From: Podarcis cretensis
Taxonomy: Eukaryota
Length of the DNA: 64,000 bases
Direction: 5' to 3'
Assembly (NCBI GenBank): GCA_951804945.1
Contig: OX638149.1
Span: 63,302,001-63,366,000, forward strand
Part shown: positions 35,910-53,500 of the stretch, one piece after another
How positions within the stretch are numbered: the stretch's first letter is position 1
How the letters are laid out: each line of letters opens with the position of its first letter
The notes under the pieces: model-generated
What the model was told of the DNA's origin: nothing
Seen by the model: the letters and a program-made list of their open reading frames with translations, nothing else
Databases searched by the model: none
Program-made: the position numbers and the translations under genes

Positions 35910-36372
35910 TAATATAAGCATTTTTACAAGACCTAATATACAAGATTGCTCTTGGAATCCCTTCCTGTTCTACAATTCTGTGATTCTATGTAGATTAAAA
36001 AGGCACCAAAAGGATTCTACCCTGCTCCCATCCATTTCATTTCATTGCTGTTAGACAAGCAAAAGTGAGATCTGCTAACAGCCCCCCCCCCCCGTTTTAA
36101 TGTATTTTAACTGAACGTTCAAATGTTCTGCAACAGGATCCTTCTTCCAAGGACATACCAGGGGAGAGAGAGAAAAGAGCAGAAAAAGGGGCGTCAGAGG
36201 GAGCGGACAGCAGGTGAGCTTATGCAAGATGACAAGCAAAAATTTACAGTCACTGTGAGAGACGCAGAAAATAACAAGTATAAGTAACAAGCTGATAATC
36301 AGCACAAATTATTGTTGAAGGGAGATTGTCATTGAGCAGTCCCATCATTTTTGTTGTTGTTTAGTCGTTTAG

Positions 36373-39300
36373 TCATGTCCGACTCTTCGTGACCCCATGG
36401 ACCAGAGAACGCCAGGCACTCCTGTCCTCCACTGCCCCCCGCAGCTTGGTCAGACTCATGCTGGTAACCTCGAAAACACTATCCAACCATCTCATCCTCT
36501 GTCGCCCCCTTCTCCTTGTGCCCTCCATCTTTCCCAACATCAGGGTCTTCTCCAGGGAGTCTTCTCTTCTCATGAGGTGGCCAAAGTATTGGAGCCTCAG
36601 CTTCACAATCTGCCCTTCCAGTGAGCACTCAGGGCTGATTTCCTTCAGAATGGAGAGGTTTGATCTTCTTGCAGTCCATGGGACTCTCAAGAGTCTCCTC
36701 CAGCACCATAATTCAAAAGCATCAATTCTTCGGCGATCAGCCTTCTTTATGGTCCAGCTCTCACTTCCATACATCACTACTGGGAAAACCATAGCTTTAA
36801 CTATACGGACCTTTGTTGGCAAGGTTATGTCTCTACTTCTCAAGATGCTGTCTAGGCCTGTCATTGCCCTTCTCCCAAGAAGCAGGCGTCTTTTAATTTC
36901 GTGGCTGCTGTCACCATCTGCAGTGATCATGGAGCCCAAGAAAGTAAAATCTCTCACTGCCTCCATTTCTTCCCCTTCTATTTGCCAGGAGGTGATGGGA
37001 CCAGTAGCCATGATCTTCGTTTTTTTGATGTTGAGCTTCAGACCATATTTTGCACTCTCCTCTTTCACCCTCAATAAAAGGTTCTTTAATTCCTCCTCAC
37101 TTTCTGCCATCAAGGTTGTGTCATCTGCATATCTGAGGTTGTTGATATTTCTTCCGGCAATCTTAATTCCGGCTAGGGATTCATCCAGCCCAGCCTTTCG
37201 CATGATGAATTCTGCATATAAGTTAAATAAGCAGGGAGACAAAATGCAGCCTTGTCGTACTCCTTTCCCAATTTTGAACCAGTCAGTTGTTCCATATCCA
37301 GTTCTAACTGTAGCTTCTTGTCCCACATAGAGATTTCTCAGGAGACAGATGAGGTGATCAGGCACTCCCATTTCTTTAAGAACTTGCCATAGTTTGCCAT
37401 GGTCGACACAGTCAAAGGCTTTTGCATAGTCAATGAAGCAGAAGTAAATGTCTTTCTGGAACTCTCTAGCTTTCTCCATAATCCAGCGCATGTTTGCAAT
37501 TTGGTCTCTGGTTCCTCTGCCTCTTCTAAATCCAGCTTGCACTTCTGGGAGTTCTCGGTCCACATACTGCTTGAGCCTTCCTTGTAGAATTTTAAGCATA
37601 ACCTTGCTAGCGTGAGAAATTAGTGCAATTGTGCGATAGTTGGAGCATTCTTTGGCACTGCCCTTCTTTGGGATTGGGATGTAGACTGATCTTCTCCAAT
37701 CTTCTGGCCACTGCTGAGTTTTCCAAACTTGCTGGCATATTGAGTGTAGCACCTTAACAGCATCATCTTTTAAAATTTTAAATAGTTCAGCTGGAATACC
37801 ATCACTTCCACTGGCCTTGTTATTTGCAGTGCTTTCTAAGGCCCATTTGACTTCACTCTCCAGGATGTCTGGCTCAAGGTCAGCAACCACACTACCTGGG
37901 GTATATGAGACATCCGTTTCTTTCTGGTATAATTCCTCTGTGTATTCTTGCCACCTCTTCTTGATGTCTTCTGCTTCTGTTAGGTCCTTTCCACTTTTGT
38001 CCTTTATTATGGAAATCTTTGTGCGAAATGTTCCTTTCATATCTCCAATTTTCTTGAACAGATCTCTGGTTCTTCCCATTCTATTGCTTTCCTCTATTTC
38101 TTTGCATTGCTTGTTTAAGAAGGTCTTCTTGTCTCTCCTTGCTATTCTTTGGAAATCTGCATTCAATTTCCTGTATGTTTCACGATCTCCCTTGCATTTT
38201 GCTTGCCTTCTCTCCCCCGCTATTTGTAAGGCCTCATTGGACAGCCACTTTGCTTTCTTGCATTTCCTTTTCATTGGGATGGTTTTCGTTGCTGCCTCCT
38301 GTATAATGTTACGAGCCTCCATCCATAGTTCTTCAGGCACTCTGTCCACCAAATCTAAATCCTTAAACCTGTTCCTCACTTCCACTGTGTATTCATAAGG
38401 GATTTGACTTAGATTGTATCTTACCGGCCCAGTGGTTTTTCCTACTTTCTTCAGTTTAAGCTTGAATTTTGCTATAAGAAGCTGATGATCTGAGCCACAG
38501 TCAGCTCCAGGTCTTGTTTTTGCTGACTGTATAGAGCTTCTCCATCTTTGGCTGCAGAGAATATAATCAATCTGATTTCGATGCTGCCCATCTGGTGATG
38601 TCCATGTGTAGAGTCGTCTCTTGTGTTGTTGGAAAAGCGTGTTTGTGATGACCAGCTTGTTCTCTTGACAGAACTCTATTAGCCTTTGCCCTGCTTCGTT
38701 TTGATCTCCAAGGCCAAACTTGCCAGTTGTTCCTTTTATCTCTTGACTCCCTACTTTAGCATTCCAATCCCCTATAATGAGAAGAACATCCTTCTTTGGT
38801 GTCACTTCTATAAGGTGTTGTAAGTCTTCATAGAATTGGTCAATTTCAGTTTCTTCAGCACCAGTAGTTGGTGCATAAACTTGGATCATTGTGATGTTAA
38901 AAGGTCTGCCTTGGATTCGTGTCGAGATCATTCTATCATTTTTGAGATTGCAACCCAGTACAGCTTTTGCCACTCTTTTGTTGACTATGAGGGCCACTCC
39001 ATTTCTTTTACGGGTTTCTTGCCCACAGTAGTAGATATGATGGTCATCCGAACTGAATTCACCCATTCCCGTCCATTTTAGTTCACTGATGCCCAGGATG
39101 TCAATATTTATTCTTGCCATCTCATTTTTGACCACCTCCAACTTACCCATGTTCATGGTTCTTACATTCCAGGTTCCTATGCAATATTTTTCTTTACAGC
39201 ATTGGACTTTCCTTTCGCTTCCAGGCATATCCGCAACTGAGCGTCCTTTCGGCTTTGGCCCAGCCGCTTCATCAGCTCTGGATCTACTTGTACTTGCCCT

Positions 39301-39462
39301 CCGCTCTTCCCCAGTAGCATGTTGGACGCCTTCCGACCTGAGGGGCTCATCTTCCAGCGTCATAACTTTTATATGCCTGTTGTCTTTGTCCATGGAGTTT
39401 TCTTGGCAGGGATACTGGAGTGGCTTGCCGATTCCTCCTCCAGGTGGATCACGTTTGGTCAA
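36373..39462 (-). CDS. BovB ORF: AP-like endonuclease + reverse transcriptase (1029 aa)
   Basis: Endonuclease motifs GTWNVRT, LGISE, QVYAPT, IGDWNAKVG, NQIDYIL and SDH. RT motifs QAGFR, FIDYAKAFDCVDH, GVRQGCILSP and YADD. No internal stops. The track start is TTG; the first ATG is at 39393. Confidence 0.96.
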   Translation of the reverse strand: MTKRDPPGGGIGKPLQYPCQENSMDKDNRHIKVMTLEDEPLRSEGVQHATGEERRASTSRSRADEAAGPKPKGRSVADMPGSERKVQCCKEKYCIGTWNVRTMNMGKLEVVKNEMARINIDILGISELKWTGMGEFSSDDHHIYYCGQETRKRNGVALIVNKRVAKAVLGCNLKNDRMISTRIQGRPFNITMIQVYAPTTGAEETEIDQFYEDLQHLIEVTPKKDVLLIIGDWNAKVGSQEIKGTTGKFGLGDQNEAGQRLIEFCQENKLVITNTLFQQHKRRLYTWTSPDGQHRNQIDYILCSQRWRSSIQSAKTRPGADCGSDHQLLIAKFKLKLKKVGKTTGPVRYNLSQIPYEYTVEVRNRFKDLDLVDRVPEELWMEARNIIQEAATKTIPMKRKCKKAKWLSNEALQIAGERRQAKCKGDRETYRKLNADFQRIARRDKKTFLNKQCKEIEESNRMGRTRDLFKKIGDMKGTFRTKISIIKDKSGKDLTEAEDIKKRWQEYTEELYQKETDVSYTPGSVVADLEPDILESEVKWALESTANNKASGSDGIPAELFKILKDDAVKVLHSICQQVWKTQQWPEDWRRSVYIPIPKKGSAKECSNYRTIALISHASKVMLKILQGRLKQYVDRELPEVQAGFRRGRGTRDQIANMRWIMEKAREFQKDIYFCFIDYAKAFDCVDHGKLWQVLKEMGVPDHLICLLRNLYVGQEATVRTGYGTTDWFKIGKGVRQGCILSPCLFNLYAEFIMRKAGLDESLAGIKIAGRNINNLRYADDTTLMAESEEELKNLLLRVKEESAKYGLKLNIKKTKIMATGPITSWQIEGEEMEAVRDFTFLGSMITADGDSSHEIKRRLLLGRRAMTGLDSILRSRDITLPTKVRIVKAMVFPVVMYGSESWTIKKADRRRIDAFELWCWRRLLRVPWTARRSNLSILKEISPECSLEGQIVKLRLQYFGHLMRREDSLEKTLMLGKMEGTRRRGRQRMRWLDSVFEVTSMSLTKLRGAVEDRSAWRSLVHGVTKSRT

Positions 39463-39572
39463 AACTCTCCACTATGACCTGTTCATCTTGGGTGCCCTGC
39501 TCGGCATAGTTCATAGCTTCTCTGAGTTCTTCAAGCCCCTTCGCCACGGCAAGGCAGTGATCCATGAAGGGG
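39446..39572 (-). ncRNA. Putative HDV-like self-cleaving ribozyme fold in the BovB 5' UTR
   Basis: Manual fold: P1 CCCCTTC/GAAGGGG, P2 GGATCAC/GTGATCC, P3 GCC/GGC, L3 TTGCCGT, an extended P4 (AGAACTC/GAGTTTT; GCTATGA/TCATAGT) and J4/2 C-C-A-A. The +1 base is a non-canonical C. Confidence 0.55.
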
Positions 39573-40119
39573 AGTCCCATCATATTATTATGCAATATTG
39601 TCCTTATTTATTCAGTCATCCAATCGTTTTCTATCACGCTTTTCAGCTCACAAGCTGGGATGGAGGAGGAATTTGTTTTACACATGGAAATTGGTGGTCC
39701 TGACCTGATTTGAGCTTTGCTAGTAGATTGCCGGCTGTATCAAGTGAACATTCACGTGTGAGCCGATTGTGCTTTTAAAGTTCATATAGAAATAAATCCC
39801 AAGCAAATTAGCTACCTCGAATACAATATTGTCAAAAAAATAATTAGCTCACATGACAGCAAATTCAGGTTTTAAGGGGGTGTTTTGAAGTGGAAAAATA
39901 ACAACATAGTGAATTTATGTTAGGAATTGGAAGGCAGGTACTATAACCTTCCAACCGTTTGACTTTACCCACACTGAACTCCTCCAGTGTCACCGAGACA
40001 GAAGGTTGCTAACCAAATCATTTTATATTAAGTCATATTTTATAGCAGAAAATGATGGGAAGAATTTTTTTTAATTGTCAAATCATTAAATGAATTAAAT
40101 TAAAGAAATTAAATTAAAT

Positions 40120-50500: not shown

Positions 50501-53500
50501 AAATAAGAGAATGAAGCATTGACAGATTCTCCCGTCCTTAGTTCAGTGTTCCAAGCAAATGGTTAAAGAGAGTCACCTTCTCTCAGAAAACAGCCACTTG
50601 GAGCACATTTGGGTCAAATCCAGTTGTAAGTCTGTTTTGGTCACATCTGTACCACTTCACCCACATGCAGCTTGAATAGGCCTAATCTATTGCTGGGGAT
50701 GAGGAAATACCATTTAAAAATAAATAGGTAAAGTACTGGAGGTTGCATATTGTGACTACTCCAAGGTCACTAAGAGATTTAGCTACATGTCTGCTATCCC
50801 AAGTGCTCTTGGACTTCAAGTCCCATCATCCCTGGCTGCTAGCCATGTTGGCTGGGGCTGATGGGAGCTGAAGTCCAACAAAATCTAGAGGGCACCAGGT
50901 GGAGGATGGTTGGTCTACTATAATGCTGAGGTTAAAAAATAAAGTTTTTATTTCTGACTTTTTTATTTTATTTCTCTCTCATCCCATAAAATATCTCCCA
51001 TGAATGTTGTGTGCATTTCCTGCTAGAAAAATGTGGGAACCTTAATCTGGCCTGCACAAGTCTCATTTATTGCTTATTGTTTTCTTTAGGACTCTGAGGA
51101 AATTACTGGCATTAACAATCCTAAACATGCTTGCTCTGCTTCTGTTTGCACTGAGGCTTCTTCAGTACTATCAGTTCGGTGTTTCAGTTCAAAGTGTTTT
51201 AGATCTGATCCTTTATCTCAGGCATTCACACAACAACTTGTGTTGTAGGTAGGACATTGTAAAGCCAGGACCTTGATTCATTTCAGAGTCCTAGAAATAT
51301 AAAGTTCTATGCCACAAGGTGGTTGTGTGGATGCATCAGATAAAGGCTCATATCTAAAGTAAAATGGCTTTTTTCCTCCTTCTTTCAAAACAAGTTTCAG
51401 AGGCCCTTGACACTGCTCTGTGCACTATGTAATCTATTCAAAAGAAGAAAAGACACTAATGAGCACACAAGTGAAGATCATGGCACATATGAGCATAATT
51501 CAACATTCTGCCCATTCTCTTCCATGAAAACTCCTTTATACATACATTTGAATTGCATATACCCAACACATTTCTTTGCTCATAAAGGAAGAAGAAAGTA
51601 CTACAGGCATAGGCAATGAACATATTTCAAAGCCAATGAATCATGACCGTAAAAGCTTACAGAAATTATTATTACTAAATATATATATATAATATAATAG
51701 GGAAAGCAAATAGAGTGAGAAACTATTATAAGGTATGAATAGAAGACAGAATCTAAAGAATTAAGATTTGGTGATAACATCAGGAATTATAGCTTCTTGG
51801 CATGCACTCAACATAACACTGACTTGATGAGGACAAATAAAGAAAAAATATAATGAAAAAGTATAAAGAAAATGTTGGTAATAACTTCAGCTGAAATTGG
51901 ATTTTATGTTGGAACAAGCCTATCTGTCATATAAAGTTCCTTGGAGGTTTTAATGATCATAAACATTGAGATTCAGCTTTCAGTTTCATCTTTCAGTTAA
52001 TATCACCATTAAAATACTCCTCCCTGATAGTTTTTTTTAAAAAATGTTTCTGCTAGCTAGCAGTTCTAACCTGATGCGTCACTGGGGCCAAGGACTCAAA
52101 GCTACTGCATTTGAAGGGCAGAAAGATGACATTATGCTTGCAATGAGGGGGGATTTGCGTACATGGCCATATTTAAGAATTGGATATATGTTAGTTCTCA
52201 AATGGAGGGCATCATGCATATAGCAGTCGTACATATGTTCCTTGGGCAGAGTGGTGAGGTGCGAAGGAGGCCACAGCTCCTGGGCCTTTAACAGGGGCAT
52301 AGGATTTCATAGGGCATTCATACTGTGGAAAATTAGCTTGCTATTTTAAAAGCATCAGTTCAAACAAAGCATAGACCTGGTATAAAATGATTAAGGGCAG
52401 CATAGAAGGGTATGCCTCAGTCCAAGTTTCAACTTTCCATTCAATAGAAAACCAGTTAAAAGCTCGTTTCAGGTTTTTCTTTTCCTTTCCTTTAAAACTT
52501 CCACATGGGTCACTGTCCTTTGCTTACTTCTCACTTAATCACCACCTATTGTCTACTCTCCTGACAAAAAAACACATCCATTTCATGGGGCTAAACTGAC
52601 CTAAAACCACCTTGCTTTCAAATTCCTACTCACTGGATTTGGGTGAGCCCAGTAGTTGAACCACACCTACTTTTGTCTTTCTATCAATTACTGGCTGCAT
52701 GAACAGCTGAGGGAAGCTAGCCAGGCTACAAATGCAGAACAATGCAAATTTAGAGCCAGAGGTAAGCTTCTGATGGTGAAGTGTCTCTTTAAGAATGGGG
52801 TACTTGACTAGGTGAGCCTTTGGGCTGGTCCAGCACGACTTTTCTTATGCCAGGCTTTGTCAGGGAATTTCCATTTGCCCTTGATACCTCCCTCAGAATG
52901 ATGTAATGGCCTATATATTGGCTTGAGGGGGCTAATACAACCCACAGACTCCCCACTCTGAAAGACATAAAATAGTGGACCTATAGTGGTTTAATTTTTC
53001 AAGTCACACCACCTCCTTTCATGGGACCCTAGTGTGTATTAGCACCATTTAAGAATGACTGTTTCGGAAGCACAAGATCCCCAGTCCCCATTGAAAGATT
53101 AACCTGATACAGCCTTTCAAAATTTGCAAAAAATAAAGCAGTTATGCTTCAGTTACCTCCTCTGTCTTTCTATAGCCAGAGACATACCACGAACTAAAGC
53201 AAGCAACTACACATCAGTCACGCTGCATATACACACTTTTAAATTACTCATTTTTTCCTCCCTTCTAAATTAACTAAATTAAGTATAAAAACCTAACTGG
53301 AAATCCCATGCCAGAAGTTTTAAGAAAGTGTTAGGATAAGCACAATTCTTGCTGAGAATAGTTTTTGTGGAAGAGACATCAATCTAACAGTTAAGGCAGT
53401 AATTCAGTATCGAGTGAGGAAAGACTGGGACATATTTTATTAGCTTCAGTTCGTGAATATAATTTTGTACTGCTCATAATTCAAAGGAGATTTGAAAACT

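Follow-up and report, generated by a model that had tools for sequence, protein, structure and literature searches.

BovB is a textbook case of the horizontal transfer of a long interspersed nuclear element (LINE) among vertebrates, and the CPEB3 ribozyme is a vertebrate ribozyme of the hepatitis delta virus (HDV) type, located in an intron of its host gene, its L3 loop reading UU..CGU and its P1.1 combining one G-C pair with a U.U. Here, we describe the 5' end of a full-length BovB from the lizard Podarcis cretensis, lying in a stretch of 64,000 nucleotides (GCA_951804945.1, contig OX638149.1, positions 63,302,001 to 63,366,000 of the forward strand; hereafter, the window). Judging from its sequence, the RNA of this squamate-type BovB probably folds over its first 128 nt (we put the probability at about 0.7) into an HDV-like double-pseudoknot ribozyme with helices P1, P2, and P3, a one-pair P1.1, and a long P4. 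The form of L3 and the layout of P1.1 are like those of CPEB3, the latter being part of a host-gene intron, whereas BovB is a transposon.

The closest described systems are found at the 5' ends of other LINEs. In PMC5786205 and PMC3774820, HDV-like ribozymes at the 5' ends of RTE elements are credited to Ruminski, Webb, Riccitelli and Luptak (2011); as far as they are described there, they concern RTE families other than BovB (some insect RTEs, according to a preliminary description of this DNA) and share with the BovB case the clade, the cleavage at the first base, the double pseudoknot, and the proposed 5' processing of co-transcripts, whereas BovB has a much longer P4 (~73 nt), a C-G pair at +1, and a P1.1 of a single pair. 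The ribozyme of the Trypanosoma cruzi element L1Tc (L1TcRz) is HDV-like and experimentally active, and it resembles BovB in its location at a LINE 5' end, its cleavage at C1, its GC-rich P1, and its one-pair P1.1 (PMC3185411). Unlike BovB, it is of another clade (ingi/L1Tc) and far shorter; its DNA has also been proven to work as an internal promoter, ribozyme and promoter sharing the first 77 nt of L1Tc (Pr77; PMC3383444). In R2, the consensus has a P1 of 6–7 bp, a P2 of at least 5 bp, a variable P4, and a conserved L3 G and J4/2 C, and the HDV-like fold likewise releases the LINE RNA from a co-transcript; however, R2 is co-transcribed with rRNA and is often cut upstream of the element, whereas BovB inserts genome-wide and its cut is predicted exactly at +1 (PMC3774820). 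The same 5'-terminal logic is found in another ribozyme class, that of the twister variants at the 5' ends of Schistosoma non-long-terminal-repeat elements (PMC8501958; PMC7761336 for RTE). Our literature search found no paper linking BovB to any ribozyme and no description of how full-length BovB RNA gains a defined 5' end; HDV-like ribozymes of RTE elements are known, and the BovB case is apparently unreported.

The BovB element and the fold of its first 128 nt

The element in the window is an intact squamate-type BovB. An 11-bp direct repeat, corresponding to a target-site duplication (TSD), lies directly 5' of C39572, which is the first base of the element, and directly 3' of the tail, from which it follows that the element spans C39572 to about 36349. 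The 5' junction (39583-39562, element sense) reads ATGATGGGACT and then CCCCTTCATGG, and the 3' junction reads ACAACAACAAAA / ATGATGGGACT / GCTCAAT around 36349. One open reading frame (ORF) of 1029 codons occupies 36373-39462 on the minus strand, and its protein is 95% identical to one of Podarcis muralis. Precomputed Pfam assignments of the P. muralis protein and of other homologues comprise PF03372 (endonuclease/exonuclease/phosphatase), PF14529, and PF00078 (reverse transcriptase). Many full-length homologues of ~1000 aa with endonuclease and reverse transcriptase, 43–80% identical to the window protein, were found in Paragonimus, Rotaria, Dinothrombium, Varanus, and others. The single endonuclease and reverse transcriptase ORF, the length of ~3.2 kb, the short simple-repeat tail, and the TSD are those of the BovB/RTE clade. 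The features of the element are as follows:

36349-39572, minus strand: full-length BovB (RTE-clade LINE), 3224 nt, with a TSD on both sides and a 1029-aa ORF
39573-39583: 5' copy of the TSD, ATGATGGGACT in element sense, read directly
36338-36348: 3' copy of the TSD, ATGATGGGACT, adjoining the ACAACAACAAAA tail
39391-39393, minus strand: first in-frame AUG of the ORF (index 180)

When 39572 is taken as index 1 and the element is read in its own sense (minus strand), its segments follow the strand order of the HDV double pseudoknot, namely P1-5', J1/2, P2-5', P3-5', L3, P3-3', P1-3', P1.1, P4, J4/2, and P2-3':

39566-39572, minus strand: P1 5' strand CCCCUUC (index 1-7), 7/7 Watson-Crick pairs with 39536-39542
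39557-39564, minus strand: P2 5' strand UGGAUCAC (index 9-16), 8/8 Watson-Crick pairs with 39445-39452
39553-39555, minus strand: P3 5' strand GCC (index 18-20), pairing with GGC at 39543-39545
39546-39552, minus strand: L3 UUGCCGU, with U21 and G26 at the reverse-wobble positions and G23 as P1.1 partner
39543-39545, minus strand: P3 3' strand GGC (index 28-30), 3/3 Watson-Crick pairs with GCC
39536-39542, minus strand: P1 3' strand GAAGGGG (index 31-37), pairing with index 1-7
39534-39535, minus strand: CU after P1', of which C38 can pair with G23 of L3 (P1.1) and U39 faces U22
39461-39533, minus strand: P4 domain, long and variable (index 40-112, ~73 nt), with three helices
39453-39460, minus strand: J4/2 GACCAAAC, with the candidate catalytic C at index 115 (39458)
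39445-39452, minus strand: P2 3' strand GUGAUCCA (index 121-128), pairing with index 9-16

The core of P2 pairs index 10-16 with 121-127 (7/7) and extends to 8 bp as 9-16 with 121-128. J4/2 reads GA-C-CAA-AC, that is, a cytosine followed by N-R-A, and L3 carries the conserved U at position 1 and G at position 6, both of them the same in the four relatives described below. A preliminary description of this DNA had proposed helices P1, P2, and P3 with their L3, and a P1 starting at the TSD-defined base 39572, all of which are present, as is the cytosine that it placed at the catalytic position of J4/2 (39458, followed by CAA). The extended P4 that it drew stands in part: three helices exist, but the basal one (AGAACUC/GAGUUUU) is weak, as most read copies carry a U at index 44 that turns the pair into U.U, and the middle helix has two possible registers. 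Two departures noted there, the initial C and the single pair in P1.1, are real but not disqualifying, as both occur in the active L1Tc ribozyme (PMC3185411).

Chance expectation and related elements

The descriptor used for the chance test required a P1 of 7 bp, a P3 of 3 bp, an L3 of 6–9 nt, a P2 of 5–8 bp, and C-N-R-A before P2', leaving the letters of L3 and P1.1 unscored, with a maximum score of 18. When both strands of the window were scanned (128 kb, 128,000 positions), 39572 ranked first, with 18/18 Watson-Crick pairs, and the runner-up scored 16.5. Three sites reached 18 in 4.03 Mb of first-order Markov sequence, corresponding to ~0.09 expected per window and to a null rate of ~7e-7 for any one given position, such as the first base of a LINE. 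The features that the descriptor leaves unscored (the U....GU of L3, the P1.1 pair, and the CCAA in J4/2) also fit. The fold at the start of the element is far beyond chance. Loosened descriptors were dropped as too noisy, one of them giving 249 matches and another many chance matches at 15–17.

A search of 181 nt against Rfam gave RF02682 (HDV ribozyme) as the only match at E <= 10 among 4227 families, with model position 1 falling on 39572 and with P1, P3, and L3 aligned as proposed; taken on its own, this match is weak evidence.

Relatives of the element were collected from metagenomes by a scan with protein alignment (loci L001-L080). On the ORF strand and directly upstream of the ORF, Rfam HDV models matched in L008 (52% protein identity to the window element; 30.3 and 31.8 bits), L063 (35%; 26.6 and 31.1 bits), and L006 (59%; 26.3 bits, local E = 0.003), all of these scores being below the gathering thresholds. 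In 66.7 kb, no families other than the HDV models were matched, leaving aside miRNA-model matches due to hairpins and low complexity and a handful of weak ones due to chance (one snoRNA, one sRNA). Locus L012 (50% protein identity) fits the HDV fold by hand, showing an 8-bp P2 (CCAUGCCC/GGGCAUGG), a P3 of ACC/GGU, an L3 of UUCUCGU, a J4/2 ending in CGAAC, a P1 of 6/7 with a G.U at +1, and a J1/2 of 96 nt. No TSD of at least 8 nt was found for L006, L008, L012, or L063, so their 5' boundaries are not independently fixed.

The closest non-ruminant relative, L006, resembles the lizard element motif by motif: both have a C at +1, one base between P2 and P3, CCAA in J4/2, an L3 of the pattern UU..CGU (UUUACGU in L006), and a P1.1 of one pair plus U.U, a layout found in L012 too. 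The broader L3 pattern U-Y-N-N-M-G-U also holds in L006, L008, L012, and L063, and J4/2 aligns with GGCCAAU in L006 and with GGCUAA in L008, L063, and the Rfam consensus. P1 and P2 stay fully complementary across the five elements despite unrelated sequences, and the P1.1 pair covaries, being G-C in the lizard, U-A in L006, and C-G in L012, L008, and L063; covariation of this predicted tertiary pair is specific to the HDV-like fold. The five elements are too far apart for a proper aligned covariation statistic, and the cattle-type elements, described below, are without the core. In our view, the site very probably carries a true HDV-like ribozyme fold, one that RTE relatives have as well.

Arguments against a working ribozyme and alternative explanations

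Several observations, presented in this section, weigh against the ribozyme proposed here. The cleavage-site pair of P1 is C1-G37, without the usual G.U wobble; P1.1 has one pair (G23-C38) plus U.U where HDV has two pairs; and the segment from P1' to P4 is without the GGGCAAC-like motif seen in relatives. We treated the wobble as a typical and not a defining feature because L006 starts with C and L1TcRz cleaves at C1. RF02682, whose gathering threshold is 44, scores 14.9 bits at the window site, a 5-kb Rfam search listed nothing of HDV type, and no Rfam CPEB3 match appeared in either the 5-kb or the 181-nt search; the Rfam models of HDV type, such as RF00094 and RF02682, omit P2 and penalise a long P4. 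Covariance models of our own were built from L008 (R1), from L006 (R2), and from L008, L063, and L006 together (R3, on a model-made alignment), single sequences and a model-made alignment being used because MAFFT misaligned the ribozymes of the relatives. Whole-window searches with R2 and R3 did not recover 39572 at E <= 10, and an R3 search of 221 nt gave 39572-39492 as best match, with P1, P3, and L3 correctly aligned, at only 6.7 bits. For such models, the 73-nt P4 and the short J1/2 are costly.

The plain nested minimum free energy (MFE) fold is not unusual (z = -1.0), MFE folding being blind to pseudoknots. The nested combination of P1, P3, and P4 amounts to -30.3 kcal/mol, to which P2 adds about -7.8 (the P4 helices alone, about -16.7 kcal/mol), and a rival nested fold that pairs index 17-24 with 73-80, in competition with P3/L3, reaches -38.7 kcal/mol. 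By these predicted values, the HDV fold is energetically competitive and not dominant. The 8-bp pairing of 39493-39500 with 39549-39556, which joins the 5' side of P3/L3 to the tip of P4, dominates the nested MFE and could represent an inhibitory alternative conformer.

It is here that a chance resemblance has to be considered, in which a GC-rich terminal hairpin and a long-range stem would satisfy the descriptor without being related to HDV-like ribozymes. The weak covariance-model scores, the z of only -1.0, and the maximum descriptor score expected by chance ~0.09 times per window speak for it. However, the match falls at the first base of the LINE, the only position predicted beforehand, which has a null rate of ~7e-7; the unscored L3, P1.1, and J4/2 features fit and match L006 motif by motif; and the relatives have their Rfam HDV matches at the same place. 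We regard this explanation as very improbable.

No HDV motif was found with Rfam, R1, or R3 in L010, L011, L017, and L042, whose 5' sequence is present, nor was one seen in L009, which is cut at its 5' end and too short to tell. The predicted ribozyme is either not universal in the clade or too diverged in these elements to be detected.

The cattle-type BovB loci L001, L003, L005, and L021 (protein identity to the lizard of 77%, 77%, 77%, and 73%; L001 94% identical to a Bos protein) have a 5' region homologous to that of the lizard from P2 onward. Their P2 reads GGACCAC...GUGGUCC against GGAUCAC...GUGAUCC in the lizard, a change on both sides, and one P4 helix pair passes from U-A to C-G, while only 3–4 of the 7 basal P4 pairs are retained. 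About 20 nt with L3, the 3' strand of P3, and P1' are missing, and the element continues for more than 480 nt upstream through tandem repeats of 40–48 nt:

L001 1-485, L005 1-452, L003 1-215, and L021 1-220: cattle-type 5' extension with 40-48-nt tandem repeats

Searches with R1 and R3 gave no convincing ribozyme in the cattle-type loci, and the ruminant BovB lineage is without the HDV core. The P2/P4 scaffold is kept in the cattle type for some reason even without catalysis, and the conserved stem could serve some other function.

RNA reads were taken from two raw RNA-seq runs and two contig sets that were labelled as a related species. Read depth is zero in the unique flank, which is uninformative, as the species or the locus may differ. 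Loose ends with low-agreement continuations were found at 39570, 39572, and 39573, from which it follows that many copies end at the start of P1; a scatter of 5' ends away from that point, which the preliminary description would have held against the ribozyme, is not what the reads display. No pile-up of molecule starts was seen at 39572 in the RNA-seq data, where reads cross the junction, ordinary RNA-seq libraries being a poor test of 5' ends made by self-cleavage. The libraries are stranded, as deduced from variants that differ by direction, and in X22 the sense coverage tapers towards the end (63, 53, 39, 36, 24) and the antisense one is flat (53, 49, 51, 57, 50), if the first mate is antisense, as in most kits; indirectly, this taper fits sense RNAs ending near +1. 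Among the copies, no read variant reached 10% in either strand of P1 or in the 5' strand of P2; the P3 variant C30>U retains a G.U pair, L3 has two variants, and P4 is the most variable part, with many variants, including G44>U in most copies.

These data bear on a second alternative, according to which the 5' end is an inherited HDV-like scaffold that cuts poorly or not at all, serving as a structured 5' leader (with cap-independent translation, 5'-end protection, or protein binding as possible roles), and an internal promoter sets +1. The C-G pair at +1, the one-pair P1.1, and the lack of a canonical P1'-P4 junction motif agree with it, as do the RNA-seq data without a pile-up of ends, the cattle type, in which the catalytic core is missing but P2 (with both strands changed) and some of P4 persist, and the L1Tc precedent of 77 nt acting also as internal promoter (PMC3383444). 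On the other hand, the catalytic positions are all present (a J4/2 cytosine with N-A-A after it, both L3 bases, U and G, and a P1 and P3 without mismatch), C1 and a one-pair P1.1 do not prevent activity in L1TcRz (PMC3185411), and no variation of P1 among copies is seen at the 10% level, which is unexpected of a decaying relic. A scaffold of this kind is unlikely in our view, and the 5' end of the lizard element is probably a working ribozyme.

Proposed mechanism, accompanying sequences, and meaning

In the mechanism that we propose, the RNA could be made by any promoter, either as a host read-through transcript or from an upstream start. The fold would set the phosphate 5' of C39572 beside the J4/2 cytosine at 39458, and self-cleavage would leave an RNA with a 5'-OH that begins at the exact first base of the element, so that full-length new copies would begin at that base. 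Only inferred are catalysis and how fast it would proceed, along with any part played in translation or in the stability of the RNA.

Two extrapolations made in the preliminary description fare less well. That BovB would need no promoter of its own is not implied, because the 5' sequence of L1Tc acts as both promoter and ribozyme within 77 nt (PMC3383444), so that having a ribozyme is no sign of lacking a promoter. That the ribozyme would help to explain the wide horizontal transfer of BovB is weakened by the cattle-type elements, as the ruminant lineage has lost the HDV core and has a long 5' extension.

One short derivative of BovB, non-autonomous and with an internal deletion, retains the ribozyme end: a loose end at 39373 (-) joins element index ~3144 (about 36429), with 27/30 bases matching, and reads and contigs join the first ~200 nt of BovB to the last ~80 nt. 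It is like the bipartite elements discussed in PMC5786205.

Downstream of the predicted ribozyme, a further conserved sequence was found:

39417-39441, minus strand: leader motif GGAGGAGGAAUCGGCAAGCCACUCC, 3 nt after P2, conserved at nucleotide level

Elements with only 44–60% protein identity show nucleotide-level conservation of this ~25-nt motif (GGAGAAGGCAAUGGCAAACCACUCC-like); in every relative whose 5' part is retained, it is located either immediately downstream of the ribozyme or within the 5' leader (L006 ~784, L008 ~128, L010 ~104, L011 ~1081, L012 ~314, L042 ~331). It is also present directly after the 3' end of the ORF in L013, L030, L031, L037, L041, L043, L076, and L077. We rejected it as a general coding sequence upstream of the first AUG, as it has an in-frame stop in L008 and lies in another frame in L012. 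Possibly, it is a cis signal common to the two ends of the element.

The searches also gave a number of separate observations. At 52890-52941 (+) of the window, a hairpin CCCUCAG...UUGAGGG encloses GCC...GGC and is followed by GGCUAAU (R2, 8.3 bits, E = 5); its likeness to an HDV ribozyme is superficial, without P2, P4, or the loop G, and is probably due to chance. A weak HDV-like candidate (R1, 12.4 bits), starting with CCCUGUC and with a P1' GACAGGG followed by AGGCAAC, was found at L023 3789-3700 (-) and L053 2535-2446 (-), on the strand opposite to a distant RTE, and possibly represents a neighbouring element's 5' end. In L006, a near-perfect hairpin of ~80 nt (445-526) located immediately upstream of the element, with strong matches to several miRNA models on both strands, is in all likelihood an inverted repeat that belongs to another transposon. 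Viral contigs gave no match to the N-terminal part of the protein, and a scan of genome contigs found only cattle-type contaminant fragments without 5' ends and distant RTEs. The cattle-type fragments L081-L092, with 77–85% protein identity to the lizard (64% for L091), are on short contigs of bacterial isolate assemblies (Aureimonas, Sinisalibacter, Veillonella, Lactobacillus) and look like host or reagent DNA contamination.

Taken over the family, a tentative reading, which we hold to be possible and somewhat doubtful, is that BovB lineages switch between a ribozyme-defined and possibly promoter-independent 5' end, as would be found in squamate-type BovB and the metagenome relatives, and a promoter-type 5' end, the ruminant lineage having deleted the P3/L3/P1' core, kept P2/P4, and gained the repeat-bearing extension of more than 480 nt. 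If this were true, the ruminant lineage would have changed its expression strategy, as marked by the loss of the ribozyme and perhaps in connection with horizontal transfer, and the ribozyme would be no general enabler of that transfer. The contrast between the lizard and cattle-type elements offers a natural experiment on a LINE replacing its ribozyme-defined 5' end.

As for the ribozyme itself, if it is as we propose, it would explain why full-length BovB copies start at one exact base, why short non-autonomous derivatives retain the 5' end, and how insertion into whatever transcribed region could give rise to an RNA of unit length, and it would add a vertebrate LINE family to the HDV-like ribozymes.

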